IMG/VR virus record: IMGVR_UViG_3300043409_000928
Location: 221,305-285,304 of that record
DNA: 64,000 nt
Strand: one strand, 5' to 3'
The notes below the pieces were generated by a model. The model was not told where the DNA came from and did not search any database. It worked only from the letters and a program-made list of their open reading frames with translations. This document shows, in pieces, positions 2,783-47,078 of this stretch; the stretch's first letter is position 1, and each line of letters opens with the position of its first letter. Made by a program: the position numbers and the translations under genes.

Positions 2783-5700
2783 CTAATTAACCAATAATTT
2801 GGCTATCTCATTGCGATACTTAGCCAGCATGATTCGAGTTTTGTTTGCTTTTTCAACTGCACCAGGTGTAGCGGCTTTATCAAACTTGCTGGAATTGATT
2901 ACTTTGTCTAATTTTTCTGCGTATACACGGGAGATTTTCTGCATAAAGTCTTGACTGTTGGCAATGGAATCCAGTGCTCCTGTGCCAAATAGTTCAGCAG
3001 TTTCAAAGTCTGTGGCCATGGCATGAATTGTTTTGACAATGTCACTCAATCGCTGTTCGTCTTTGAGCCCACCGTGTTGCGCCAAGTTGCCCGGCACAAC
3101 GGGCTTGGTGCCGTGTGCCAATTGATAGTAATAGGAATACATGTCCCCGCCCCAATTGTGCGGATCAATGCTTACTGTGCTCAATTGCGTGTCTTTGCTT
3201 TGACGGAAGCTGACTGGTTGCCCGCCACGTGTCTTAACTTGTACGCCTTGTATGCCAAAGCTCATGTTTAATACTTCAGCAACGCTACTCATTAGGCTGG
3301 TGCTGATAACACCCTTGACACGATATTCTGGTGCTAGTGCTCGTGCCCAATCGGCATGTTCGTTATAGGTGTAAATTAAATCAACCTGTATGGGACCTGC
3401 GCTGGTATCCATGATAACATTGGTACCGTTGCTGGTATTGTATTCAGTGTGGCTGTCTGCAAACGACTTTACAGCATCTGCATACTCACTGGTGCGTCGG
3501 GCGGCACCTACACCCTCTCTGCTGTGAATATAGCACACAACATCTACATCACCGTATTCACGAGTAGGATCTGCTGTTAGGTCACGCTTGTAATAGGTAC
3601 CGGACCCAACAGGCTTGCCCATTCTAATTTCAACATCCAGTTCATTCTCAGCTTGCCAAGCATTAAATTCTCTTTCAAAGTGATCCAGCACATTGATTGC
3701 TTCTTCGATCACATGCGGAGTAATCACAGTATTTTGGGTGGCGGCACTGGCCCAGCCACCTTCTGTGATTGATTCGGTCTTCGGAGCCTGTTGTTCTTTA
3801 TACCATTCCCAAGCTTGATTGTTTATTTCTCTGCCAACTGTTCTTCTATAGTAACCTATAAGGCCCACTAGTTTTTGAGTTTCATCCCATACGGCTGAAG
3901 CGTCTTTACCAAACCACGGCTTGAAATCATCACTCTGCGCCCATTCTTTACAATGCTGTCTAAGTTTACTACCATCTGGATCATATGCTTGCCATGCTCT
4001 ACTGCCGGCCAACTCTACATCCAAGTTATCAAACAGGGTTTGTTCAATCAAGGCAGGTGTAATTACTCCTGATTCTTTTTTGTTGTCGATAGTCCGGAGT
4101 TGTTTGATAACTCTTGGATCTAATACTACACCCTGCGTTGGTTCATTGTAGGCAATCCAACCGTGGCCAGGGTCGAACACACTGGTAAAGCCCAAGTCTC
4201 TAAGCACCTTGTTCCAGCGAACAATATTGGTTTCATCACTCTTGCCTAATCTGCTTAAACAATCGTAGATGAACCAGTATGGTGTACCATCGAATTCATC
4301 TTCTTCAGCTGCCTGTTGCATTATTTCTTCTGAACAATACTGACTTAATGCTTGTTTTAATTTGGCACTATCAACTTGTGTTTCTTTTGTCATTTCACCT
4401 GAACGGTCATATTGAAACAACTGGATGTAGGGCATGTCTTCGCCCCATGGTAGTTTTTTACCACTGCGTGCCATGTCTACCGCATAGCCTAAAGGATAAA
4501 AGTAAATGCCTTTAGGAGTATCTTCACTAATACCTACTTGCGGGTTGATACCTAGCTTGGGTTCTGCTGTCATACTGATAGCCCAATTCTTAATGTCGCC
4601 CAAGGTCTTAGCAACAGCCTGCAACTCTTTCATACCTGACGCTGGCCGTGTATTTTGATCTGGATTAGCTCTTGCTTCTGGCAACTGTGCTGATTCATTT
4701 AGTGCAGAATCTGCAAACCAAGGGTCTATGATTACCAGCTGACCATTCTTTCTTTGCATTACATTTTCTGTATGCAAGTCCCAGCCAAACTTGTTTATCC
4801 TACCTGCCTTGTACAGTATCTGCATAACACCATACAATGTATGAAGCTCTTTGAACTTTGAATTATCATCTGCAAATGTCAAGTCTTGCCAGTACTTGGC
4901 CAGGTTGGCGGCCTGTCTTGGATTGTACTCCGTCCAGGTATCAGCCAACCCCAGTGCATGGTCAACTGCGTCCCAGGATTCATCGCCGGCTACAAAATCA
5001 CTAAAGAACCAGACCACACCTTCATTGAATGAATTTTTCTTGATAGGACTCAATCGTTCCATGTCAATTTGTGTGTACTCTCGGTCCAGTACGCTGATTT
5101 TATTATGTTCATTGATCACTGGCAAGCATTCCAAGTTCTGATGTGCCAGGCAGAATTCATAAAACTTGTTGAATACTTGTTCGGCTTGACTGCCAGGATC
5201 TGGCATTAATATTTTAATAATGTGACCTTTGTTTTTGGCCCACACAGTTGAATCGGCACCTGAGCCTACCTGCTTGTAACCCAATGCTGTAAATTCTTTT
5301 TCAATTTGGTCAGCATGTGCTGTGCCTGTTTCTGCTTCCGCCACACCTTGTGGGTTGCCTAATCTCCTAACAGGAATTTTATATTGTTGTATCAGGCTGT
5401 CAATCTCTGGCGGAATGTCGGCAGGCAATACAATTTCTTTAATTTTCCAATTGTCAACCAACACTTCGTGATGGGTTGACGTATCCATACTTAAAGTGGG
5501 ATCAATTTGCCCTGGTCGGCTAACATATTTTTGTTGTCCTCGTTGTCCTGCAGTCATTTTATATTGATCTGACCCCAAATCTGCACGCCCACCAATTGTA
5601 ATATGACCGTCGAGTACAATACCTACGGTTGGATTAGATCCGCCGCCCCACCTATTTTTTCCTAAAGATTCAGCGTTTGGTGCTAGGTAGGCGCTTAGTT

Positions 5701-8479
5701 CAATCTTGTTATTCACTTTTCCTTGCAAGAATGACTCTAATTGGTTCAATGGAGCCCAGTGTACTTTTAGCATTGCCGCGGCTTTTTTAGCATCCATTTT
5801 TTGTTGAAATAGTTGTTTAAGATATTTTTCAGCACTGTAAGATTTAGTATTCATATCTTTACCAGCATCAAGTGTAGATAATCTTTCATACTCGGCCTTT
5901 TCTTGAGGAGTCATCCAGGCATAATTGTTTAGTTCAGCATCTATTCTTCTTTGAAATTCGGTATTATATAAATTTTTCAATTCTGGATTTGTTTTATATA
6001 ATGCCAAACGATCCTTCATTGGCATTGCTGATATCTGGTCATAGTTGAAACTACCAGTGGTATCTTCCGCCACACCTTGCTTGGGAATCAACAACTCAGG
6101 CATGCGATATTCACTAACATCTACTGGATATGGCTGTAATGATGCTTTGTATGCCTCAGCATACTGTTGTTTTTCCACTGTGGTTTTGGCTCTGTAAAAC
6201 TTGTTGGCAATGGCCATGTCGCCCACCAAAGTTCCCGGTGGAATTGAAATCTTTTTTGGACCGTAGTATTTTAATTTGTCAGAATCTTTGTTGGTCAAAC
6301 TGTAAAAGGTTGATTCCCATTTGTCTGGGTGCAAGGCATATTGTGCAGTTGCTCGTTCTGGAACAAACTGTGCCAGTGTATCTGCACCGGGATGAAATTT
6401 ACCCAACTTGGATAAACTTATAGCAGTATCATTGCTTTCGCCTTCCGTCACACCTTGTTTTATTCTGCTTAATTCATATCTAACTATAGTACCAGTGTCT
6501 GCACGGAGAGGCCTATAGCCCCAAGCACGAGCATAACGAATCACCAGTCTATCATATAACTTGGCACGACTTTCACTGTTTTGGTCAGGCTCCACTTCTT
6601 TGCTGGCAGAGAATGTCAATCGTTTTGGATTGTGTTCTTTAATGTATTGCTGGATGGCGGACAATACTGTGGCAAATACTCGTTGAGCATCACCGTCACC
6701 AGTGACTTCTTGGCTGTTGTTTCTGTGGAACTCTACTTGTATGACTTCTTCACCTTCTTCATCATACTCCATGTTGAACATGATGCTGAGGTTAGAACCA
6801 TCTGGCAAGCGAGCTAGAGCATCCATAGAATCATCAGCTTCGCTCTTTTCCCATGACATGGGATAAGGTTGATCAAAAGCTTCGTCAAGACTTTCAGGAG
6901 TCCAGGCCATATTTTTAGCACCTTTCACTGTGGGTTTAAATCCTTGGCTCTTATAAAACTTGGTCAGCTTGGCCTGACTGACTTGCCCTTTGTCCCAGGG
7001 GAATAATGTCAATGCAATGCCTGCATCTTTGGCCAAGGCCTGCAGTTCTTGCATGGCACGACTGCCCACGCCTTGCCGCAATGGATACGCTTGAATCCAT
7101 TTGACTTCTACTGCGCCTCGTCGACTAAAACTTGGCGTCAGCTCAAACATGGCAAACTGTTGATCGTCACCTGTTCCGCCCAGGGGCATGACATGATTGT
7201 TTTGAAAAGTCTGAGGATATTTTGTATATACTGCGTCAATGAAATCTGTAACTTTAGTATCAGCTTCAGTTAAGTTTTCGTTAGTAGGAACTTCACCCAG
7301 GCCAATTTTACCCGGATACATTGCACCGTCTCGAACTCGTTCGCCGCCATCAAAGTAACGTATTTCAATGGGCATGTCTGGCCAGTTTAATCTGTATGCG
7401 GCCATGATGCGGTGATTGCCTTCGTTGACCCAAGCTTCGCCATTATAGGCCACCATGATATAAGGCAAGTATTCATCATCGGGATTGTTGCCTGGAGGTA
7501 GCTTGCCTGTGCGTTCCATATAGTCCATCAACCATTTCAAGTCATCTCGACGCACATTGGTTTGTTCGTTACGCATGCCTGGCAGTGACGCCAGTCGCAT
7601 TACACGCACTCTAGGCGGAGTACCACGCACACTTGCTGTGGTACTGCCCATGTAAGGCACGCCAAAACTGTTGCGACCCTTGCTCTTGGCATAGTCAATT
7701 TTGTCTTGTAGCCAGTCTTCGTTAGGCACATCTATACTCAGGGTGCCCTCTTCTATCACTGCTTCGTCTACAGGACCACGATCAGCGGCCACTGCACTGG
7801 CAATATCCCACCACTCGCCGGGAAAGTATTCTACTTGTAACATGCTGGCAGGTACTGTGCCGGGAACAATTATCTGTTCATCATCGCGCTCAATGCCGTT
7901 TTTATTTTCTGGGTATGCTCCAAACTTTGCCACCAGGTCAGCCCATTTGACACGGAACATGGTGGCTTGTTCTTTGTCGACATGATAGTAGCCACCTTCG
8001 GGATCGTATGCAAAATACACACCTGGACCAGCATATCCATCTGCACTGGGCAGTAATCCTTTACGCAATACGCTGTCTAGTCCACGGGGCATGTATCCTG
8101 CATGGTACACATACTCACCTGGGCCAGCACTTTCTTCTAACTGTAACACAGGTACAAATGCAGGGATAGTGGACATGCCCAGCTCTAGTGCCTTGGTTGC
8201 ACGGTGATTGCCATCTATAATATAACCTTGACTGTCAGCCACAATGGGGCGAGTAGCAATGTCATGGTCAGTAAGGTCGTCCACATAATCAAAATCAATG
8301 TCCAGCACACGATTATATGGGTCGGTCTTTTCGCCAAATTCATTTAGTTCAAGACTGTCAATGTCAATCTTTTTTAATTCCCATTGTGGAACACTGGCTA
8401 TCACGCTGTCTAATTTAAATCCTTTTTTATGGATCTTTTTAATGTAAGTCAATACTTGTGCGCTGGTAAATGTTTTCAT
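2783..8479 (-). CDS. 1898-aa multi-enzyme polyprotein (ParB-like x2, ART-like, GNAT, kinase-like, nucleotidyltransferase, unknown modules)
   Basis: IIDGNHR and VNEGNHR (ParB-like); YHAG..GLLP..VYF..E (ART-like); RQGVGS..LTKFYKSQGF (GNAT); VGSGADSTVW..IIKI..DLHTENVM..IIDP (kinase); GSG..GDVDV..QVDL (NTase); modules separated by [LIV]xE linkers. Confidence 0.8.
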   Translation of the reverse strand: MKTFTSAQVLTYIKKIHKKGFKLDSVIASVPQWELKKIDIDSLELNEFGEKTDPYNRVLDIDFDYVDDLTDHDIATRPIVADSQGYIIDGNHRATKALELGMSTIPAFVPVLQLEESAGPGEYVYHAGYMPRGLDSVLRKGLLPSADGYAGPGVYFAYDPEGGYYHVDKEQATMFRVKWADLVAKFGAYPENKNGIERDDEQIIVPGTVPASMLQVEYFPGEWWDIASAVAADRGPVDEAVIEEGTLSIDVPNEDWLQDKIDYAKSKGRNSFGVPYMGSTTASVRGTPPRVRVMRLASLPGMRNEQTNVRRDDLKWLMDYMERTGKLPPGNNPDDEYLPYIMVAYNGEAWVNEGNHRIMAAYRLNWPDMPIEIRYFDGGERVRDGAMYPGKIGLGEVPTNENLTEADTKVTDFIDAVYTKYPQTFQNNHVMPLGGTGDDQQFAMFELTPSFSRRGAVEVKWIQAYPLRQGVGSRAMQELQALAKDAGIALTLFPWDKGQVSQAKLTKFYKSQGFKPTVKGAKNMAWTPESLDEAFDQPYPMSWEKSEADDSMDALARLPDGSNLSIMFNMEYDEEGEEVIQVEFHRNNSQEVTGDGDAQRVFATVLSAIQQYIKEHNPKRLTFSASKEVEPDQNSESRAKLYDRLVIRYARAWGYRPLRADTGTIVRYELSRIKQGVTEGESNDTAISLSKLGKFHPGADTLAQFVPERATAQYALHPDKWESTFYSLTNKDSDKLKYYGPKKISIPPGTLVGDMAIANKFYRAKTTVEKQQYAEAYKASLQPYPVDVSEYRMPELLIPKQGVAEDTTGSFNYDQISAMPMKDRLALYKTNPELKNLYNTEFQRRIDAELNNYAWMTPQEKAEYERLSTLDAGKDMNTKSYSAEKYLKQLFQQKMDAKKAAAMLKVHWAPLNQLESFLQGKVNNKIELSAYLAPNAESLGKNRWGGGSNPTVGIVLDGHITIGGRADLGSDQYKMTAGQRGQQKYVSRPGQIDPTLSMDTSTHHEVLVDNWKIKEIVLPADIPPEIDSLIQQYKIPVRRLGNPQGVAEAETGTAHADQIEKEFTALGYKQVGSGADSTVWAKNKGHIIKILMPDPGSQAEQVFNKFYEFCLAHQNLECLPVINEHNKISVLDREYTQIDMERLSPIKKNSFNEGVVWFFSDFVAGDESWDAVDHALGLADTWTEYNPRQAANLAKYWQDLTFADDNSKFKELHTLYGVMQILYKAGRINKFGWDLHTENVMQRKNGQLVIIDPWFADSALNESAQLPEARANPDQNTRPASGMKELQAVAKTLGDIKNWAISMTAEPKLGINPQVGISEDTPKGIYFYPLGYAVDMARSGKKLPWGEDMPYIQLFQYDRSGEMTKETQVDSAKLKQALSQYCSEEIMQQAAEEDEFDGTPYWFIYDCLSRLGKSDETNIVRWNKVLRDLGFTSVFDPGHGWIAYNEPTQGVVLDPRVIKQLRTIDNKKESGVITPALIEQTLFDNLDVELAGSRAWQAYDPDGSKLRQHCKEWAQSDDFKPWFGKDASAVWDETQKLVGLIGYYRRTVGREINNQAWEWYKEQQAPKTESITEGGWASAATQNTVITPHVIEEAINVLDHFEREFNAWQAENELDVEIRMGKPVGSGTYYKRDLTADPTREYGDVDVVCYIHSREGVGAARRTSEYADAVKSFADSHTEYNTSNGTNVIMDTSAGPIQVDLIYTYNEHADWARALAPEYRVKGVISTSLMSSVAEVLNMSFGIQGVQVKTRGGQPVSFRQSKDTQLSTVSIDPHNWGGDMYSYYYQLAHGTKPVVPGNLAQHGGLKDEQRLSDIVKTIHAMATDFETAELFGTGALDSIANSQDFMQKISRVYAEKLDKVINSSKFDKAATPGAVEKANKTRIMLAKYRNEIAKLLVN

Positions 8480-8481
8480 AA

Positions 8482-9327
8482 TTACATTACCAATATTTTG
8501 CCTTCAAGATTGGACATTACATCGTTAAACATAAGTTCCATATCTCCGGACAGCATTTCAGTTGCATGAGTTCTACTGGCATCATCTCTGGCCTCAGGCT
8601 TTAAATTTAGATACTTGGAAGGTGAGCCCCAGGCCTGACGTCCGTAGCCCAAGTTACTGGGCAAGGGATTAAAAGTCACATGGCCTGTACCCAGGTATTG
8701 TGCAAATATTTCGTATAAGAATTCATAGGGTCTGCGAATCTGATTACTGCGACTACTTTTTTGTGTGCCTATAGCATTGAATAGGGCATTGTATTCAGGT
8801 GTCAACTCTGATTTTAAGTTGCCGCCACGCTCACCACTCTTACCATAGTATTCTTCCAGCATGGAATTAACCTGTCCAAAGAAATGATTTTCTGCCGACG
8901 GCCATGCACCTTCTCGATCTATTTTCCCGCCCCTGCGGTGACCTGCTTGCACAGCATGTCCAAACCTATGAGCCATAAGCCAGGGTGTAAGCATTTGCTT
9001 GGCGTCGCCTTTGTTGCCCACATACACTATGGTAATGGCATTTTCATGGCCAGCAACAATTTGCTCACCGTCATCTCCAAAGATGATTTTAACTGTCGCT
9101 GGGTCCATTGGGCCGTATTCACTGTATCGCCCTGTGCCTGAGATGTTGCTGAAAAACAGTCTGATATCGTAAGGAGTATTGGCAAAGAACTTTTCTGCTT
9201 TTAAACGATTCATTGGATGCGGAATCAGCTTTTTATCAGCACCACGAAATGGCCCAGGCTTGTCAAAGTCACCCAATGGCACATAATCTGCCATTGGGAC
9301 TTCGTTAATTAAATCGCGTATTTTCAT
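8482..9327 (-). CDS. Hypothetical protein, putative internal head protein
   Basis: 281-aa ORF; N-term MKIRDLINE|V propeptide-like. Confidence 0.6.
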   Translation of the reverse strand: MKIRDLINEVPMADYVPLGDFDKPGPFRGADKKLIPHPMNRLKAEKFFANTPYDIRLFFSNISGTGRYSEYGPMDPATVKIIFGDDGEQIVAGHENAITIVYVGNKGDAKQMLTPWLMAHRFGHAVQAGHRRGGKIDREGAWPSAENHFFGQVNSMLEEYYGKSGERGGNLKSELTPEYNALFNAIGTQKSSRSNQIRRPYEFLYEIFAQYLGTGHVTFNPLPSNLGYGRQAWGSPSKYLNLKPEARDDASRTHATEMLSGDMELMFNDVMSNLEGKILVM

Positions 9328-9932
9328 GCCATGTCGCCTATCTTTAGGTGATAGCCAAACTTTATACTATAGCGTACATCATTGGAACTGTTGCTGCCGC
9401 TGTGCCAACTACTTGCCCAATTGGCCGAGTACCAGCCTTGCCCAAACGCACAGGGCATTACATTTGGAAAATTGCCTGCACGATCGTTGTAGAATACAGT
9501 ACTTTTTTCTTCTATTTCATCTTTATTAAAGAACACCATGCCTGCAGTAACAATTGTACGATCATCAACATGTATGGTAGTGTCAAATCCTGGCAGATCC
9601 CTGCAGACTTCATGATATGGCAGTATGTGTAATTTCAGTTGTTCATAGGTAATATTGCTCCACTCCTGCTGGAAAAGTGAACTTTCCCACAACTTGGCCA
9701 ACAGTATTTCTTGAGCATCATCTAAACTCTTGGCAAATTTAGACAGTACAGGCAAATGGTCTATATCCCAAGCTGTTTGTCTAAATGACCATTTTGAATT
9801 CTCATTATCCCCTCCGGGAAGTTCAGAAGACTGCCGCCATGCCACCTGTTCAAATTCCAATCCGTTAGGCACTTCAAACTCTAGTAGATACAGCAGAGAT
9901 CTGTCCTCAGTAATAGATTTAATTATATCCAT
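9324..9932 (-). CDS. 2OG-Fe(II) oxygenase-like protein
   Basis: HxD (IHVDD), distal H (SWHSG), R (VRYSI). Confidence 0.55.
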   Translation of the reverse strand: MDIIKSITEDRSLLYLLEFEVPNGLEFEQVAWRQSSELPGGDNENSKWSFRQTAWDIDHLPVLSKFAKSLDDAQEILLAKLWESSLFQQEWSNITYEQLKLHILPYHEVCRDLPGFDTTIHVDDRTIVTAGMVFFNKDEIEEKSTVFYNDRAGNFPNVMPCAFGQGWYSANWASSWHSGSNSSNDVRYSIKFGYHLKIGDMA

Positions 9933-9950
9933 GGTCTTAGATCTGCATTA

Positions 9951-12272
9951 TTAATGAAACAACAAATAGCTACCGATTACATCGTTGCGATTGGCACTGT
10001 TATCTCCATCGCCTGGCATTACAATGGTATTCCATTTTGGCTTGTCGCCAACAGGAGTCTTCATCATTTCATCATATGTTAAAATACTGTTCTTATCTAT
10101 AGCGTATTTCTGCGCCATAATTGATTTGAATTGGTCAAGATTTTCTGCGCTGGCAAACTGCATACGGCCTTTGGCATCTTTCTTTAAATTGTTACCATCA
10201 CGGGCAATTAGGTCAAAGAACATGTCTTTGGGAACTACCTTGCTGTGCTTGACACGCTGAAAATCAATTTTCTTTTCCTGACTGCTCAATGCGCCACCAG
10301 AGAAATTCATATTAAAGTTCTTTGGTCGTTGTCCTGTGGCAACATCGGCCATTTTAGTATAAGCATAAAAGCCCACGTCTGGGTTGGCCGTGGCCACACC
10401 ATAGGCCATGTCTAGATATTCAGCACTGAAGAAGTCACCTGCATCGTGCCAACGCACCACAACCTTGGCATTCTTTTTGGCCATTTTACTTTTGGCGGCA
10501 GCAATTTCTGCATTTAATTGACTTGCAAAGCCTTGGGGATCGTTCAACAAGAAGTTCAGCATACGAGCCAAGCCCATGCTGACTGCTTTGAACATCACAT
10601 AGCTACCTTTCATTGCGTAGCAGAATGTCTTACATGCGCCAGCACCTGGACAAGTGTCTACCACAACAAACTCTCCGGTCTTTTCATTTACAGCCAGACC
10701 TTTGAGTGCAGGCAAGCCAATGTCAAATATGGCTTCTGTGCCTGTTTCGCTGTGTTGCATCTTGGCATTTTGTCCAAGAATTCGTCCAGGACGAACCATA
10801 ATAGATTTCTTTAATGCTTCAGCGTCAAATGTTTTACCGCCTTCATCTTTGACTTGAATATTGCTACCGTGAATATATGGATAATCAAACTTGTCACGCT
10901 TGGTCTTTGTTTTGTTTTTACTGCGACCCATTAGGTCTTGCATTTCTGCATCTGGAACAGCACGGTAATTGGCACCTAGACCAAAGTCACCTGGCGCTTC
11001 TGCTATATTCTTTTTAATTTCACCGGTATTGGGATTTTCATGATCGCCACGCTTGACACCAGACTTATAAACTTTCTCACCTGTGCTTGGGCTTATATAG
11101 TAATCACCTTTAGAATCTGTACCAATGCTTTTCACTTTGTATTTCTCGCTGCCTTCCGCCACACCTTGGTTGACGCTTTCGTTTTGTCTGACCATTTTCA
11201 TTAGTTTATCATAATATGGTCTTGTTTTATTTTCTATTCGTCTGGCAATCTCTTTATCATTTCTAAATTTACGATCATACTCCCATGCCTGATCTTGTGT
11301 TAAGCCAGCGGCTTTACCAGTTGGATCAATTGGATAATTATTCAATCCTTTAATCTCGTTAATTGAGTCTCTTGCTGTCTTCGTTCCCTTATGATAAGAC
11401 ATTTCTAGGTTATCATTGTCACTGGATGCTACTTCTACTTTTGCTTGAGAATGTAAGTCAAACATTTCATTACTCCACTTTGACATTTCCGTGTTTGAAT
11501 TTAACATTAATCCAGATATCATATTATAAACATATCCAAGTAAAAAATACGCCTGTGTATTACTTGGCATTTGTAATTTAGAAGTTTTTTCTTTTTTGCC
11601 AATCTCGTAACCAACACCACCACCAGCCGCACCTGCCACAGCCGCCGCACCCAAGCCTTTTAAGAATCCTCTACGGTCTATTTCATCAATTTGACTTTCA
11701 TTTAAGTCACCAAATGGCAAGTACCAAAACCAATTTTCAAAGCCACCTGGATTGGTATCGTAGTCCTGGTGTGCGCTGTTACGGGCACTCATCATCATAC
11801 GCTTGAATTCACTCACAGCGCCATTCTTTTCAGCCACTGCTTCTAGTGCATCATATAATTGGCCAGCTTTAAAACTATCTCTATGCTTTTCAATTCCCGG
11901 TGCCAGCTCATCATACACATCAGCAAATTGCAAATGTAAGTCGCTCATTACACCTTCTTTGACTGTGTCTTCTACTGTGCCTACATAATTGTGATCGTGT
12001 ACTTGATAGCCTTGCTTCTTGTACCATTTGACGGCTGTGTCACAGGCCTGTTCGCGACCGTCTGCTGTGACAGAACACATTCTTTGTCGAGTTTCACCAC
12101 GCTGACTAACAGCAGTATGGTTAGGATCGCTTACTGTAACAGCAACCTTGTGTTTTTGGCGGCCTTCTACTGCTTCTTCGACTTCTTTTTCATCATCTTT
12201 AACAAAAGCATCCAAGCTCATTACAGTAAGTCCGTGTAGTTTGCCTACACCAGCCACTTCGAATATTTTCAT
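9951..12272 (-). CDS. 773-aa polyprotein with internal twin-arginine motif and C-terminal GP88-like (radical-SAM-like) domain
   Basis: MKIFEV N-term; linkers AVE|G, VKE|G, IDE|I, QGVAE|G, IAE|A; RRGFLKGLGAAAVAG; CPGAGACKTFCYA and RWHDAGDFFS. Confidence 0.7.
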   Translation of the reverse strand: MKIFEVAGVGKLHGLTVMSLDAFVKDDEKEVEEAVEGRQKHKVAVTVSDPNHTAVSQRGETRQRMCSVTADGREQACDTAVKWYKKQGYQVHDHNYVGTVEDTVKEGVMSDLHLQFADVYDELAPGIEKHRDSFKAGQLYDALEAVAEKNGAVSEFKRMMMSARNSAHQDYDTNPGGFENWFWYLPFGDLNESQIDEIDRRGFLKGLGAAAVAGAAGGGVGYEIGKKEKTSKLQMPSNTQAYFLLGYVYNMISGLMLNSNTEMSKWSNEMFDLHSQAKVEVASSDNDNLEMSYHKGTKTARDSINEIKGLNNYPIDPTGKAAGLTQDQAWEYDRKFRNDKEIARRIENKTRPYYDKLMKMVRQNESVNQGVAEGSEKYKVKSIGTDSKGDYYISPSTGEKVYKSGVKRGDHENPNTGEIKKNIAEAPGDFGLGANYRAVPDAEMQDLMGRSKNKTKTKRDKFDYPYIHGSNIQVKDEGGKTFDAEALKKSIMVRPGRILGQNAKMQHSETGTEAIFDIGLPALKGLAVNEKTGEFVVVDTCPGAGACKTFCYAMKGSYVMFKAVSMGLARMLNFLLNDPQGFASQLNAEIAAAKSKMAKKNAKVVVRWHDAGDFFSAEYLDMAYGVATANPDVGFYAYTKMADVATGQRPKNFNMNFSGGALSSQEKKIDFQRVKHSKVVPKDMFFDLIARDGNNLKKDAKGRMQFASAENLDQFKSIMAQKYAIDKNSILTYDEMMKTPVGDKPKWNTIVMPGDGDNSANRNDVIGSYLLFH

Positions 12273-34719: not shown

Positions 34720-36933
34720 TTAACTAATTTTTAATTCAGTACCATCGCTTGAAACATGGTGTGTATTCAACTCTTCTTTGATGATGCGTTTGGCAATAGG
34801 CAAACGAATTTGTTCATTTATTAATCTCTTCATTGGACGAGCACCCATTGTATCACTATAACCATGTACTGCCAAATAGTCCAATGCACTATCGTCATAT
34901 TCAATACTTTGCTTTTGTTCCGCAAGTTGAGCACGAATTTGTTGCATAAACTTGTCAGCAACACGTCGAATTACTTCCTTGTCTAATCGATTAAACTTAA
35001 CAGTTGCGTCTAAGCGATTGCGGAATTCTGGACTAAAGAACTTCTTAACTGCTTCTTCGTTTGCATCGTTATTCAATGCGCTACCAAAACCAATTACATT
35101 CCGTTCGCTGTCTACTGCACCCAAGTTGCTGGTCATAATAACAAACGCATTGCGGGCACTGGCCTGTTTATTATCACTGCCGGTAATAATACCATTATCC
35201 ATTAAGCCCAGCAAGACCTGGATCACATCTGGGTGAGCTTTTTCAATTTCGTCAAACAGCAATACACAGTTGGGCACACGCTCAAGTTCATTGATAAGCT
35301 TACCAGAGCCAGCTTTGCCTTCGCCGTATCCAACATAGCCTGGCGGACTACCAATCAAGCTGGCAATTTTGTGCGGTTCACGATATTCGCTCATATCAAA
35401 TCGTACAAGTTCCATTCCCAGTCCCAATGCCAATTGTTGGGCAAGTTCTGTTTTACCAGTACCAGTTGGGCCTACAAACAAGAAGTTGGCCATTGGGCGA
35501 TTCACTTCTTTCAATCCTGACTTGGCAATATACACCATGTTCATCAAGCGTTCAATTGCATTGTCTTGACCAAACACATTTGTACGCATACGGCTTTCTA
35601 ATTCTGTGACTGCAACGCCTTTTTGCTCACCCAGTTGTTCCAAAGGAACACGAGTCAAGTCGCTAATTTCTCTGCGAACATGTTCTGCTGTCAGCATTGT
35701 ACCTGCTTCAGTATTTGTGACACGGAGATAAGACATAGCAGAATCGATAATATCAATTGCCTTATCTGGAAGCTTGCGATCTAACATGTACTTCATTGAC
35801 AAGTCAATTGCCAAGTCAATGGTTTCCTCATTGATATCAAGTTTATGGTATTTGGCATACAATGGAGCAATTCGACGCAACATCAATTTGGTTTCTTCAA
35901 CTGTGGGTTCGTTAATGTCAATCTTAGTGAAGCGGCGCAGTAGGGCACGGTCTTTCTCAAAGTGTTCGCGGAACTCTTCGTAGGTGGTACTGCCAACGCA
36001 ACGTAGCTTGCCTTTTTCCAAGCTGGGCTTGAGCATGTTTGCTACATCCATACTGCCTTGGCCACCTGCGCCCGCACCCATGATCATATGAATTTCATCA
36101 ATGAATAAAATTGCATCTTCACGATCTTCAAGAGCTTCCAACACCTGTTGCATACGTTCTTCAAAGTCTCCTCTGTATCGTGTACCAGCCAGTAACTTGC
36201 CAAGGTCTAAACTGTAAATTGTTTTCTTTTTAAGTACTTCCGGGACTTCACCTTTGATGATGGCAACAGCAAGACCTTCTACAATGGCAGTCTTACCAAC
36301 GCCTGGTTCGCCAACCATGATAGCATTGTTTTTCTTCTTGCGAGTAAGTGTCTGTGCAAGACGAAACACTTCTTTTTCTCTGCCAATTAACGGATCAATT
36401 AACGCACTTTCTGCACTCTTATTCAAGTTAGTTGTATACTTGCTAAGAATCTTTTCTCCGCCACGCTGTTTGGCCACTTTGCTTTCTTTACTACGACCAT
36501 CTTTTAGACGACCAATATAGTTAATCAATATTTCTTTTGTAATGCCATTCTTTGCTAAGAAAAAATTGGCATGGCTATTTTTTTCGCTGGAGATGCTGAT
36601 CAGCAGATCCAATGGTTCCATATGACCACGACCTGTAAAGATGGCCTGCGTATAAGCACGATTGAAACAACGCTCTAAGGTTGCAGTTTTGCGTGGCTTG
36701 GTAATACCTTCAACGCGAATGTCTTCTTGCTCTCTTAACCATAGGTCAATGTCATCTTTAAGAGAGTTTACATCAACCTCTAATTCTGTCAAGGCATCTT
36801 TGATTTCATCCTCGTCCAGCATGACTCTAAGTATATGCTCAAGGGTTACATATTCGTGTTCCCTGTTAAGGGCTTCCTGAAATGCCTTGGCAATGACTTC
36901 GTTAATGCGATTGTTGTTTTCTTCTTGACTCAT
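34720..36933 (-). CDS. clpA: ATP-dependent Clp protease ATP-binding subunit ClpA
   Basis: HEYVTLEH N-domain, two Walker A (GEPGVGKT, GPTGTGKTE), FDMSEY, GSPPGYVG. Confidence 0.95.
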   Translation of the reverse strand: MSQEENNNRINEVIAKAFQEALNREHEYVTLEHILRVMLDEDEIKDALTELEVDVNSLKDDIDLWLREQEDIRVEGITKPRKTATLERCFNRAYTQAIFTGRGHMEPLDLLISISSEKNSHANFFLAKNGITKEILINYIGRLKDGRSKESKVAKQRGGEKILSKYTTNLNKSAESALIDPLIGREKEVFRLAQTLTRKKKNNAIMVGEPGVGKTAIVEGLAVAIIKGEVPEVLKKKTIYSLDLGKLLAGTRYRGDFEERMQQVLEALEDREDAILFIDEIHMIMGAGAGGQGSMDVANMLKPSLEKGKLRCVGSTTYEEFREHFEKDRALLRRFTKIDINEPTVEETKLMLRRIAPLYAKYHKLDINEETIDLAIDLSMKYMLDRKLPDKAIDIIDSAMSYLRVTNTEAGTMLTAEHVRREISDLTRVPLEQLGEQKGVAVTELESRMRTNVFGQDNAIERLMNMVYIAKSGLKEVNRPMANFLFVGPTGTGKTELAQQLALGLGMELVRFDMSEYREPHKIASLIGSPPGYVGYGEGKAGSGKLINELERVPNCVLLFDEIEKAHPDVIQVLLGLMDNGIITGSDNKQASARNAFVIMTSNLGAVDSERNVIGFGSALNNDANEEAVKKFFSPEFRNRLDATVKFNRLDKEVIRRVADKFMQQIRAQLAEQKQSIEYDDSALDYLAVHGYSDTMGARPMKRLINEQIRLPIAKRIIKEELNTHHVSSDGTELKIS

Positions 36934-40297: not shown

Positions 40298-40469
40298 AGT
40301 CAGATATTTAGCCTTTTATAGCCATCCGCCTGCCCAAGTTGGACTGGTTAGTTAAATACTTTTGGTTCAGCGATGAATCAACCCAAGAGAACAGTTGGGT
40401 TGTATAACATGCAAATCTAAACAATTTAATGAAATCAGCCCAACAATACACTTATTGTCAAGGAGCAAG

Positions 40470-41225
40470 ATGAGAAAACAACAAAAACGAGTCCAACAGG
40501 ACCGTAAAGTAGCGTTTGACGGAAACGCAGTCATCGATTTAAATAATTTCAGGGACCGAGAAGAAACTAAACCTTCAAAATACAAACGAGTTGAAATTAC
40601 ACCCCGTAATCTACGCCAAGAAGATTACCTTGCACATTTAGAAAATCCACATAAAGACATGGTGTTTGCACTAGGACCTGCTGGTACTGGTAAAACACTC
40701 ATTGCCACATTGTGGGCTGTTAAACAGCTAAAATCGGGCAGGGCTGAACGCATTGTAATTACCAGACCAGCAGTCAGTGTTGATGAGCAACACGGCTTCC
40801 TACCAGGTGATCTAATGAGTAAAATGGCGCCGTGGACTCGTCCTGTATTTGATGTGTTTCGTGAATACTGGAATGCAAAACAAATAGAAGGTATGATAAC
40901 CGAAGGCACAATAGAAGTTGCTCCTCTAGCCTACATGCGTGGTCGTACATTCAAAGACAGTATTGTTATCGCTGACGAAATGCAAAACGCTACACAAAGT
41001 CAAATGAAAATGTTGCTGACAAGAATCGGTGATAACAGTAAATTTGTTATTACCGGAGATCTTGAACAACACGACCGTGGGTTTGAACAGAATGGACTTA
41101 AAGATTTCTTAGAAAAGATTCTTGATAGTAATCAATCAAACCGTTTGGCAGTTGTTAAGTTTGAGATTGGCCATGTTGAAAGACACCCGGCCGTTGCCCA
41201 AGTTCTAGGAATTTACGGAGATTAA
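40470..41225 (+). CDS. phoH: PhoH family ATPase
   Basis: GPAGTGKT, ITRPAV, GFLPG, YMRGRTF, DEMQN, ITGDLEQ; SD AAGGAG. Confidence 0.93.
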   Translation: MRKQQKRVQQDRKVAFDGNAVIDLNNFRDREETKPSKYKRVEITPRNLRQEDYLAHLENPHKDMVFALGPAGTGKTLIATLWAVKQLKSGRAERIVITRPAVSVDEQHGFLPGDLMSKMAPWTRPVFDVFREYWNAKQIEGMITEGTIEVAPLAYMRGRTFKDSIVIADEMQNATQSQMKMLLTRIGDNSKFVITGDLEQHDRGFEQNGLKDFLEKILDSNQSNRLAVVKFEIGHVERHPAVAQVLGIYGD

Positions 41226-45941: not shown

Positions 45942-47078
45942 TCAAACAAGTGCTTTTAGCCTATCAATAAAACTTAGATAGTATGGTGGTAAGGACTGCA
46001 CCTTGGCCAGTTGATTGTATTTTGTGATCCAATCTAACAAATTTTGAATCCTAATTTTGTCTGGTGGGTGAGACGTTGTAATTTGCGGCTTGATAAATTC
46101 TTCAAATTTGATGAAATAAGTTTTCCAGTGATGATCAAGTGAACTTGGCCAATTTGGTAGGAACTGATGTATGCTGTTACCAAAATTTGCAACACTGAAC
46201 ATCTGGGGTTGATTGACCATGTTAATTTTTAGTTTTACTTTAGCCAATAATCCTTCTTGATCCAACCAATGCAATATATTGATATGGTTTTCTATGTTCA
46301 ACATGCTTATACTGATAGATATAGTTACATCGGCATTTTTTGCAACCATTGCTTTTAGATTAGAACCAAATCTTTCAAAATTCAATCCGCCTCGAATAAA
46401 TTCACCTTCTTCACCAATGGCATCTAAACTGAATATTAAATTTATTACAAGCGGCGTATTAGCCTTAAGTCTGTCAATGTTTGATTCAAATTTGGTCTTG
46501 AAGTTACCTGAATAATTGCCATTGGTTATTACGCGGAGAGTAATTGCATTTGTCAATCCAATTGTTAGCATTGAATCAACAATTTTATTGAATGCTGGAT
46601 CAACACTAGGTTCGCCGCCATGTAGGTTGATATGATGTAGTGTATTTTGATGTTGTAAGATGAACGCCGAAAGTTTCCCCCAACTCACATCAAATAAATC
46701 TTCCTTGAAGGGATACTTGTTTGTCATTGATTGCCATACCGTACTTGAATATTCGCTACAAATGATGCAATGCATATTGCAGGTATCACCAAAGTCAATA
46801 TCAACTATGCCAGGTGGCTTTGGTTTTGTACGTAACATTTCAATAGTTGTTACACCCCCGTCAGTTAAGCGAAATGAAGTGCCGCCCATGGCTTCTTCTC
46901 TCCAACAAGAGCTACATGCTAGATGTTTTTTATTTTCTAGGAACGATTTCTTTACATCTTCAACTCGAACAATATTTGTTTCATATTTATTATATGTTGT
47001 TTTGCAACAGAACTTCCAGTCGTCAGTCCTAAGTCTAACAAATGTTTCTTCCCACGGATATAAACATGAATGATCCAT
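45942..47078 (-). CDS. Radical SAM protein with N-terminal twitch/SPASM-like cysteines
   Basis: CNMHCIIC (CxxxCxxC), GGEPS, TNG; extra C..P W, CC, CSSCW. Confidence 0.85.
   Translation of the reverse strand: MDHSCLYPWEETFVRLRTDDWKFCCKTTYNKYETNIVRVEDVKKSFLENKKHLACSSCWREEAMGGTSFRLTDGGVTTIEMLRTKPKPPGIVDIDFGDTCNMHCIICSEYSSTVWQSMTNKYPFKEDLFDVSWGKLSAFILQHQNTLHHINLHGGEPSVDPAFNKIVDSMLTIGLTNAITLRVITNGNYSGNFKTKFESNIDRLKANTPLVINLIFSLDAIGEEGEFIRGGLNFERFGSNLKAMVAKNADVTISISISMLNIENHINILHWLDQEGLLAKVKLKINMVNQPQMFSVANFGNSIHQFLPNWPSSLDHHWKTYFIKFEEFIKPQITTSHPPDKIRIQNLLDWITKYNQLAKVQSLPPYYLSFIDRLKALV

Follow-up and report, generated by a model that had tools for sequence, protein, structure and literature searches.

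A codon-exact linker box at the exchange points of cassettes in phage polyproteins

A short DNA stretch of 15–20 nt encoding Gln-Gly-Val-Ala-Glu, spelled with the same codons hundreds of times, marks the joints between small protein modules in giant multi-module proteins of an uncultured group of large T4-like phages. Modules are swapped between phages exactly at this stretch, which therefore looks like a standard connector for mixing protein cassettes and probably, as inferred from sequence alone, also a protease cutting site. No match in the literature or in a cultured phage was found.

The linker box in the window

The analysis started from a 64,000-nt stretch (the window; positions 221,305 to 285,304 of the IMG/VR record IMGVR_UViG_3300043409_000928), in which a sequence-only reading had pointed to an invariant 16-bp site, in frame at module junctions of two genes. 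This observation was confirmed. The 16-mer CAAGGTGTGGCGGAAG matches exactly at three positions and with one mismatch (GCG to ACG) at a fourth, all of them on the minus strand, a point that the sequence-only reading did not mention. The chance expectation is 0.04 matches at ≤2 mismatches, and none of 100 shuffled sequences reached four. No further copies were seen at ≤3 mismatches in the window, except for one chance-level hit on the plus strand. All four copies are in frame as QGVAE or QGVTE, a peptide that can indeed be encoded in 256 ways (2×4×4×4×2), as had been stated, and the aligned 135-nt flanks share only scattered columns and no extended similarity. The claim that the copies always lie between unrelated domains is borne out by relatives, as homology segments to other contigs start or stop at these residues. 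The features are as follows (L numbers in the text denote contigs or loci that carry the box):

2783–8479, minus strand: polyprotein gene P1 (1898 aa, about 10 modules)
9951–12272, minus strand: polyprotein gene P2 (773 aa)
5335–5350, minus strand: exact linker box (QGVAE + G), junction of modules M7 and M8 in P1 (residues 1044–1048)
6064–6079, minus strand: exact linker box, junction of M6 and M7 in P1 (residues 801–805)
6442–6457, minus strand: one-mismatch linker box (QGVTE), junction of M5 and M6 in P1 (residues 675–679)
11153–11168, minus strand: exact linker box in P2 (residues 369–373), in front of a 52-aa mini-module
4694–5335, minus strand: module M8, a protein-kinase-like cassette bounded by QGVAE and LNE
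5336–6064, minus strand: module M7 (243 aa), bounded on both sides by exact linker boxes, without assigned function
6065–6442, minus strand: module M6 (126 aa), bounded on both sides by linker boxes
10998–11153, minus strand: the 52-aa mini-module (GSEKYKVKSIG...), between QGVAE and IAE
8482–9932, minus strand: two ORFs (281 and 202 aa) between P1 and P2, with no linker and no family match, probably not part of the system

In P1 the predicted junctions, of the type [LIV]-x-E, follow residues 116, 243, 405, 533, 679, 805, 1048, 1262 and 1573, those without the box being written in ordinary codons. The recognisable modules are a weak ParB-like match (phrog_620, 1e-4), a weak GNAT match (Pfam, 2e-3, below the cut-off), DUF6934/phrog_16075 and a T7 gp0.7-type kinase (phrog_15752, E = 3e-10, residues 1052–1254). 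P2 comprises small N-terminal modules, a Tat-signal-like module (residues 197–217), the linker, the mini-module and a GP88 (PF17338) domain (residues 528–684). A single-sequence AlphaFold model of M7 was uninformative.

Codon choice and spread of the box

The box is not a local duplication relic. Scans of IMG/VR, whose counts are lower bounds, gave hundreds of in-frame copies in about 380 different flanking contexts, including at least 171 exact copies in 120 loci, of which 164 were in open frames, in 164 distinct contexts. The core 16-mer belongs to a box of roughly 20 nt whose consensus is CAA, GGT, GTG, GCG and GAA, preceded by nAG and followed by GGC, encoding [K/E/Q]-Q-G-V-A-E-G. Among QGVAE sites sampled without regard to codon choice, 109 of 144 (76%) use the exact 15-mer, and the ascertainment-corrected value (p = 0.735) stands against 0.0038 (0.4%) expected from codon usage. 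GTG and GCG are rare codons in these ORFs (0.19 and 0.076), and the preceding codon ends in G in 74% of cases, against local preference. The exact fraction is the same across GC bins from below 0.38 to 0.52, and the carrier phages are deeply diverged, with a median DNA polymerase (PolB) identity of 63%.

The constraint on the DNA is, however, not absolute. In L122, a close relative with 91% identity, the two linkers that share a flank with the window sites 11153 and 5335 carry 2 and 1 substitutions, respectively, and two further QGVAE sites carry synonymous ones, so that every QGVAE copy there carries a change and there is no hard constraint on each copy. Across the family a smooth decay series was seen, with 245, 121, 78 and 84 sites at 0, 1, 2 and 3 mismatches, respectively. 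In these loci 528 sites were in frame and 2 out of frame.

Exchange of cassettes at the box

Homology between contigs breaks at the linker. Of the junction pairs compared, 312 share one flank only and 25 share both, and 30 pairs fall from ≥85% to about 25–45% nucleotide identity exactly at the box. Within polyprotein ORFs, 56–69% of homology ends lie within 20 nt of a box, against 5.9% of ORF length. Cassettes 92–100% identical in DNA sit in otherwise diverged phages: a 162-nt cassette bounded by two boxes is 100% identical between L014 and L117, and other cassettes are 92–96% identical at the nucleotide level between loci whose remaining genes are 40–70% identical in amino acids. A double-substituted allele, CAAGGCATGGCGGAA, recurs in 10 sites with different partners.

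The same behaviour is seen for the modules of the window. In L122 the kinase module downstream of site 5335 is 98% identical in DNA while the upstream DNA is unrelated, and homologues of M8 in L122, L126, L241, L231, L020 and L094 start at residues 1045–1058 and end at 1255–1262. Homologues of M6 in L235 and L021 (92–94% aa identity over residues 674–805) end exactly at residue 805, and at the junction of M5 and M6 homology segments end at residues 674–680. The 52-aa mini-module follows at least five different upstream modules in other contigs (L101, L056, L077, L041, L223, L090 and others). Window modules are reordered or missing in L241, L231 and L126. Breakpoints at the 16-mer, identical cassettes in different genes, and modules gained, lost and reordered, which had been set beforehand as criteria of support, were found.

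Conservation of V-x-E and the putative protease site

Among the 528 copies mismatches are fewest at the T of GTG and the GA of GAA, and most frequent at the Gln codon, at the Ala codon and at third positions, so that the decay pattern keeps only V-x-E. This fits the cleavage motif of the T4 gp21-family (S77) prohead proteases, with a small or hydrophobic residue at P3, any residue at P2 and Glu at P1, after which they cut (PMC5694885, PMC9026906). In agreement with this motif, the alternative junctions in the window are L/I/V-x-E, and homologous modules are preceded by LDE or IEE in the window where relatives have VAE. Genes for gp21-like protease and gp23-like capsid proteins lie next to linker ORFs in L019, L042 and L218 (phmmer E = 2e-28 to 1e-17); none was present in the window, which covers only part of its 285-kb contig. 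In 54–55 carrier loci, however, the polyprotein gene sits beside PolB and a ferritin-like gene and not among head genes, and the N-terminal leaders are heterogeneous.

Interpretation

The reading that we consider more likely than not is that of a shared homology box for cassette exchange that doubles as a cleavable linker, separating small, independently folding cassettes (median 75 aa) in polyproteins of an uncultured clade of large T4-like and jumbo phages. At the DNA level the box would be a patch of identity shared by otherwise unrelated genes and by diverged phages, at which general homologous or homology-facilitated recombination during co-infection crosses over, so that cassettes are swapped, inserted, lost and reordered in frame. 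This role rests on the mapped breakpoints, which show it in comparisons of sequence. How the spelling is kept standard is inferred: only copies that still match the common spelling could exchange and each exchange would regenerate an intact box, and together these would act as homogenisation plus frequency-dependent, second-order selection, while individual copies would drift once they stop exchanging. A stretch of 15–20 bp is short for efficient RecA/UvsX-type recombination, so an unknown helper cannot be excluded. At the protein level the polyprotein would be cut into free cassettes, most likely inside the prohead, and delivered with the DNA like T4 internal proteins; cleavage, virion packaging and the effector status of the cassettes, most of which have no recognisable domain, are likewise inferred.

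The interpretation given by the sequence-only reading, that of a recombination target for cassettes that is also a protease-cleavable linker, integron-like but resolved at the protein level, is therefore supported in part. The constraint on codon choice and the exchange at the site hold, the cleavable linker is plausible, and the integron-like mechanism is not supported. A further and more tentative possibility, on balance unlikely, is that the box is a universal connector kept by selection for exchangeability, maybe with a dedicated box-recognising factor, which would let a whole community of diverged large phages draw on one shared pool of hundreds of small injected anti-host cassettes, in an integron-like cassette economy operating inside reading frames and resolved by proteolysis.

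If the favoured reading is right, this is the clearest natural example so far of the linker sequence postulated by modular theories of phage evolution, a short and standardised DNA joint that lets unrelated protein modules be recombined in frame between distant phages and then released as separate proteins. It would explain how large phages quickly diversify their accessory or anti-defence repertoire, and would define hundreds of small dark-matter proteins as discrete units with exact boundaries, ready for functional screening. It also suggests a natural design rule, a cleavable linker combined with a homology box, for packaged multi-protein payloads in laboratory phages.

Comparison with known systems

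The T4 internal proteins (IPI–III, Alt) are diverse, fast-evolving accessory proteins that share only a short conserved element, the capsid-targeting sequence, ending in a hydrophobic-x-Glu site; they are cut in the prohead by gp21 and injected with the DNA (PMC3012670, PMC9026906, PMC5694885). In T4 this element is an N-terminal leader of 10–20 aa on separate small genes, whereas here it is an internal linker, repeated up to 7 times in one ORF and spelled with fixed codons across diverged phages.

The polyvalent proteins of phages and conjugative elements (Iyer et al. 2017, PMC5512222) string together 2–15 unrelated conflict-type domains (ParB-like, kinase, acetyltransferase), are thought to be delivered with the DNA and processed into units, and show cassette-like variability at kinase loci. 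P1, with its about 10 modules, fits this description of domain content. Processing there is ascribed to an embedded zincin-like MPTase domain and no conserved linker is described (the word does not occur in the paper), while no peptidase domain was detected in P1, P2 or seven other long polyproteins, within the limited sensitivity of the search, and most cassettes here are about 60–120 aa and Pfam-dark.

In the T-even tail-fibre adhesins short conserved coding motifs (His boxes, gp38 glycine-rich motifs) separate hypervariable segments and exchanges occur within or near them (Tetart 1996/1998, Trojet 2011, PMC3157838), and the coincidence of exchange points with the motif is also found here. 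Those motifs are structural parts of a single folded protein in one gene family, whereas here a single universal box joins unrelated domains in many genes and probably gets cleaved. In polymorphic toxins (Rhs PxxxxDPxGL, CdiA VENN) a short peptide encoded by conserved DNA marks the point where variable C-terminal cassettes are exchanged by recombination, and in Rhs it is also a cleavage site; these have one junction per protein, in bacterial genes with immunity partners and orphan cassette arrays, while here the junctions are serial, the genes are phage genes and no immunity genes are seen.

Integrons also insert an open-ended pool of small cassettes at a recurring short site. They use structured attC sites (imperfect palindromes of about 60–130 nt) and an IntI tyrosine recombinase, and each cassette is a separate gene. 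None of this was found here: the box lies inside a reading frame, shows no evident dyad symmetry as judged by eye only, has non-conserved flanks and no predicted stable fold, and no IntI-type recombinase was found among the window ORFs scanned or the ten most widely shared neighbour clusters that were annotated, several neighbour families being without annotation. In Botstein's modular theory and the short conserved boundary sequences of lambdoid phages, shared sequences at module borders are proposed as crossover points, but there the borders lie between genes and the evidence for linker sequences is sparse, whereas here they lie inside genes, with hundreds of codon-exact copies and mapped breakpoints.

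Alternative explanations

The codon exactness could instead be selected at the RNA or translation level, for instance as a rare-codon or Shine-Dalgarno-like pause that lets the upstream module fold or as a binding site for an RNA factor, with recombination as a by-product. In favour of this, GTG, GCG and the preceding nAG are minor codons in an AT-rich background, AAGGUG resembles, in our reading, a Shine-Dalgarno core, and the box always lies at domain boundaries. We consider it unlikely, since the other three codons are the common ones and the rarest alternatives (GGG, GTC, CAG) are not used, the spelling is the same across GC contents, a two-substitution allele spreads as a unit, copies decay freely at third positions, other junctions in P1 use ordinary codons, and no stable local structure is predicted.

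Slightly less likely is a dedicated machinery that recognises the box, such as a site-specific recombinase, a nicking or homing endonuclease, or a recombination initiator such as a G-rich structure. The conservation of 15–20 nt across phages with about 63% PolB identity, the cassettes bounded on both sides by the box, a GIY-YIG-like ORF next to linker ORFs in L019, L042 and L070, and the four GG runs of the box when followed by GGC speak for it. Against it stand the lack of evident dyad symmetry, the restriction to reading frames, with no occurrence between genes in these loci, and the absence of an integrase or recombinase in the neighbours described above. The predicted G-quadruplex is marginal (−2.7 kcal/mol) and absent at the window sites, and a nuclease cutting this box would cut the phage's own genes many times.

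A mere protein motif inherited from one ancestral duplication, with no role for the DNA, would agree with the drift of individual copies and the V-x-E constraint, but is very unlikely and already contradicted by the codon statistics and the breakpoint mapping, together with the about 380 unrelated contexts, the flanks saturated at synonymous sites while the linkers stay the same, and the deep divergence of the carriers. Chimeric assembly at a short repeat is the least likely explanation, for although all carriers are metagenomic contigs, the identity patch (16–21 nt) is shorter than the final assembler k-mers in common use, the junctions are always in frame in long ORFs, the decay pattern is biological, and the same architecture appears in hundreds of independent samples, in contigs up to 524 kb.

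The linker box and its setting in the window

The 16-mer CAAGGTGTGGCGGAAG was found on the minus strand at three positions of the window, together with a fourth copy that differs from it at a single base. At ≤2 mismatches 0.04 matches are expected by chance, and none of 100 shuffles gave four. The four copies are in frame as QGVAE or QGVTE and are distributed over two open reading frames as follows:

5335, minus strand: exact copy, in P1
6064, minus strand: exact copy, in P1
6442, minus strand: copy with one mismatch, in P1
11153, minus strand: exact copy, in P2
2783-8479, minus strand: ORF of 1898 aa, polyprotein P1
9951-12272, minus strand: ORF of 773 aa, polyprotein P2

A comparison of the 135-nt surroundings of the four copies showed no extended similarity beyond the motif, so that this is not a tandem or segmental duplication. 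The observation made in the sequence-only reading, an invariant site recurring in frame in two different genes, is confirmed. The window belongs to IMG/VR contig 3300043409_000928 (285,304 bp), whose nearest cultured relatives, as judged from the clamp loader, are the Pseudomonas jumbo phages of the PA5oct group, at 52% aa identity. Megablast of the region against GenBank phages gave no match, and tblastn of P1 gave only a weak hit to one module in Vibrio schizo-T4 phages. A single-sequence AlphaFold model of two adjacent modules of P1 (M6-M7) had a mean pLDDT of 38.6 and was uninformative.

Distribution of the box

An exact-match scan of IMG/VR revealed at least 120 stretches, which hold 171 copies of the motif, 164 of them in open frames as QGVAE and in 164 different 105-nt contexts. 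Many of these metagenomic contigs (the loci designated L below) carry 2-4 copies on one strand. The consensus extends to about 20 nt, [A/G/C]AG CAA GGT GTG GCG GAA G(G)(C), and is referred to here as the box. No GenBank/INPHARED phage carries it, since a 30-nt consensus query against 50,697 phage records (2.3 Gb) found only one chance-level copy of the 16-mer. A search of 185,579 GTDB genomes with the 19-mer gave 19 stretches, of which only two MAG contigs (L271 and L272) look like family members. These are binned with Bacteroidota (a Haliscomenobacter MAG and a lake Bacteroidetes MAG), which gives no prophage signal and represents either a weak host hint or a mis-binned phage contig. Among 77 loci found through the GP88 domain of P2 only the closest relatives carry the box, indicating that it is not tied to that domain. 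A full-text literature search for QGVAE returned only alpha-synuclein papers, other literature searches found no description of such a linker, and the paper on polyvalent proteins (Iyer et al. 2017, PMC5512222) never uses the word 'linker'.

Codon exactness

In the ORFs that carry the motif, the five codons have frequencies of 0.74 (CAA), 0.45 (GGT), 0.19 (GTG), 0.076 (GCG) and 0.80 (GAA), and codon usage therefore predicts the exact 15-mer in 0.38% of QGVAE sites. After correction for the way in which the loci were found, the exact fraction is 0.735 (95% interval 0.65-0.81). A second IMG/VR scan, with a pattern degenerate at all synonymous positions and hence unbiased for codon choice, gave 109 exact copies among 144 in-frame sites, a sample rather than a total. 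Of the remaining sites, 25 carry a single mismatch and about ten are unrelated high-GC hits. The exact fraction is 0.69-0.84 in every GC bin from below 0.38 to 0.52. In addition, the preceding codon ends in G in 74% of cases, although AAG, GAG and CAG are minor codons here. The carrier phages are deeply diverged, with a median identity of 63% (minimum 44%) between their PolB proteins and of 49% for a ferritin-like neighbour. Vertical neutral inheritance cannot give this pattern.

Modules are exchanged at the box

Among 497 junctions, 312 pairs from different contigs share a homologous flank on one side only, whereas only 25 pairs share both sides. In 30 pairs the DNA identity falls from ≥85% to about 25-45% exactly at the box. 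Loci L014 and L117 share a 162-nt cassette at 100% identity, bounded by two boxes and with unrelated DNA outside. The kinase module downstream of window site 5335 is 98% identical in L122, a relative whose P2 is 91% identical, where it lies behind a different upstream module. Inside polyprotein ORFs, 56% of the homology ends (≥85% HSPs) and 69% (≥95% HSPs) lie within 20 nt of a box, while only 5.9% of ORF length lies that close to one. Cassettes 92-96% identical in DNA occur in locus pairs whose other shared genes are 40-70% identical in protein, so that cassettes move between diverged phages. The pool is large, with about 380 flank families on each side of 496 junctions, and families with three or more members have a different partner almost every time (79 partners for 93 members and 76 for 88).

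In the window itself, homology segments of P1 start and stop at residues 116-120, 233-246, 393-413, 529-537, 674-680, 805, 1045-1058, 1255-1262 and 1571, which are the predicted junctions. The module order differs in loci L241 and L231, and L126 lacks several modules. These results satisfy the support criteria set in the sequence-only reading. The box was also seen at gene ends: in L053, L082, L231 and L034 some ORFs stop 2-8 codons after it (e.g. ...QGVAEDN or ...QGVAEGKK followed by the stop), and some start with a leader of roughly 15-40 aa followed by the box, as expected if genes are split or extended at boxes.

Constraint and drift of the box

In linker-bearing ORFs there are 245, 121, 78 and 84 in-frame sites at 0, 1, 2 and 3 mismatches, respectively, and only 2 sites out of frame. 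The box thus exists only as coding sequence, and it decays. Mismatches are rarest at the T of GTG (4) and at the GA of GAA (7 and 2) and commonest at the first base (109, giving Q->E/K), in the Ala codon and at third positions, and the requirement at the protein level is therefore V-x-E. The first-base variants GAAGG... (EGVAE, 26 sites) and AAAGG... (KGVAE, 24 sites) keep the remaining 14 nt exact.

A closer inspection of L122 showed that there is no hard constraint on each copy. The two linkers that share a flank with window sites carry changes, namely QGMAE (2 nt) next to the homologue of the site-11153 mini-module and GCC (1 nt) next to the homologue of the site-5335 kinase module, and two further QGVAE sites carry single synonymous changes (GTA, GCA). 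A two-substitution allele, CAAGGCATGGCGGAA (QGMAE), recurs at 10 sites with different partners (loci L016, L018, L024, L015, L117, L122, L214, L216 and L235), so that box alleles spread as DNA. Box similarity does not fall with synonymous divergence of the flanks, although this comparison is bounded by the inclusion rule of ≤3 mismatches. In our reading, exchange at the box would continually regenerate and spread the majority spelling; only matching boxes could exchange, which would give a frequency-dependent advantage to the standard form.

The box as a putative protease site

T4-family prohead proteases cut C-terminal to Glu in short motifs (L/I-x-E in T4, S/A/G-x-E in phiKZ, A-x-E in SPN3US), and T4 internal proteins are a diverse set that shares only a short targeting leader ending in such a site. 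The window polyproteins have L/I/V-x-E followed by G, A, S, D or E at every module border, and homologous modules are preceded by VAE in one contig and by LDE or IEE in the window. At the DNA level the other junctions of the window protein are not recognisable as decayed boxes (6-10 mismatches of 15). A second [LIVM]-x-E just after the box is not enriched (14% against a background of 12%). Genes for gp21-like proteases, gp23-like capsid proteins and portals lie next to linker ORFs in loci L019, L042 and L218. A short leader directly followed by the box (MKTLR[D/E]YINLIE..QGVAE) starts some ORFs, but leaders are heterogeneous and a common N-terminal capsid-targeting leader was not found. It also speaks against a protease role that many polyprotein genes lie beside PolB rather than beside head genes.

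Two features of the cassettes would be exposed by the predicted cleavage. At window 11620-11705 (P2 residues 190-217) a twin-arginine (Tat) signal-like segment (RRGFLKGLGAAA; Pfam TAT_signal at cut-off) sits in the middle of the polyprotein, directly after a predicted cut following LNE, and in L078 the same module directly follows a QGVAEGSLEE linker. Cleavage would expose it as an N-terminal export signal, which raises the possibility that some cassettes are re-exported to the periplasm after delivery. In L116, L241, L253 and L059, several cassettes begin, right after the linker, with GWKD/GWKQ followed by a Gly/Ala-rich hydrophobic stretch (e.g. GWKDxVAGGAMxLGALGA), which looks like a signal or membrane anchor that cleavage would expose.

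Interpretation and alternatives

The interpretation put forward in the sequence-only reading, a recombination target for domain cassettes that is at the same time a protease-cleavable linker, is partly supported. The codon exactness and the mapping of the breakpoints onto the box come directly from the sequence comparisons, all of them on metagenomic contigs, while the recombination mechanism, the cleavage of the polyproteins and their packaging are inferred.

A dedicated recombinase or nuclease is not supported by the anatomy of the box or by its neighbours, but it cannot be excluded because several conserved neighbour families have no annotation. In this respect, a GIY-YIG-like ORF (N-terminus MKPYTYLIKHRPTGQVYYG...), identified by reading the N-terminus and not by an HMM hit, lies between the gp23-like capsid gene and the linker-bearing ORF at L019:3241-3984, L042:7870-8589 and in L070 (minus strand), and free-standing homing endonucleases could promote local exchange. 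A translational pause or RNA signal would explain the rare codons, but not the common ones, the spreading double-substitution allele or the free decay at third positions, and a G-quadruplex or hairpin in the box is marginal or absent. A duplication relic and an assembly artefact are contradicted by the codon statistics and the breakpoints.

Each ingredient of the system has a precedent: T4 internal proteins with a targeting leader and gp21 cleavage, polyvalent proteins, T-even adhesin shuffling at conserved motifs, and polymorphic-toxin cassettes. What we could not find described anywhere is their combination, that is, one codon-standardised linker repeated inside reading frames, shared across a diverged uncultured phage clade, with breakpoints mapped onto it.

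Cassette content and neighbouring genes

A Pfam search with seven long polyproteins gave only weak GNAT and ParB_N hits. The window also carries a gp44-type clamp loader, tail-fibre genes and the following genes:

34720-36933, minus strand: ClpA/ClpB-like double-AAA+ ATPase (phrog_4871, E about 1e-242)
45942-47078, minus strand, and 40395-41225, plus strand: a radical-SAM protein and a PhoH-like protein

The ATPase recurs in 15 motif-bearing loci (e.g. L081:4020-6359) at 41-80% identity, and may be linked to unfolding or processing of the polyproteins, a possibility only on present evidence. The radical-SAM and PhoH-like proteins are encoded by auxiliary genes typical of large aquatic T4-like phages. 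A further conserved neighbourhood, seen at L059:4967-8181, in L250 and in about 54 other loci, consists of a family-B DNA polymerase, a ferritin/Dps-like gene (PF00210) and a linker-bearing polyprotein gene.
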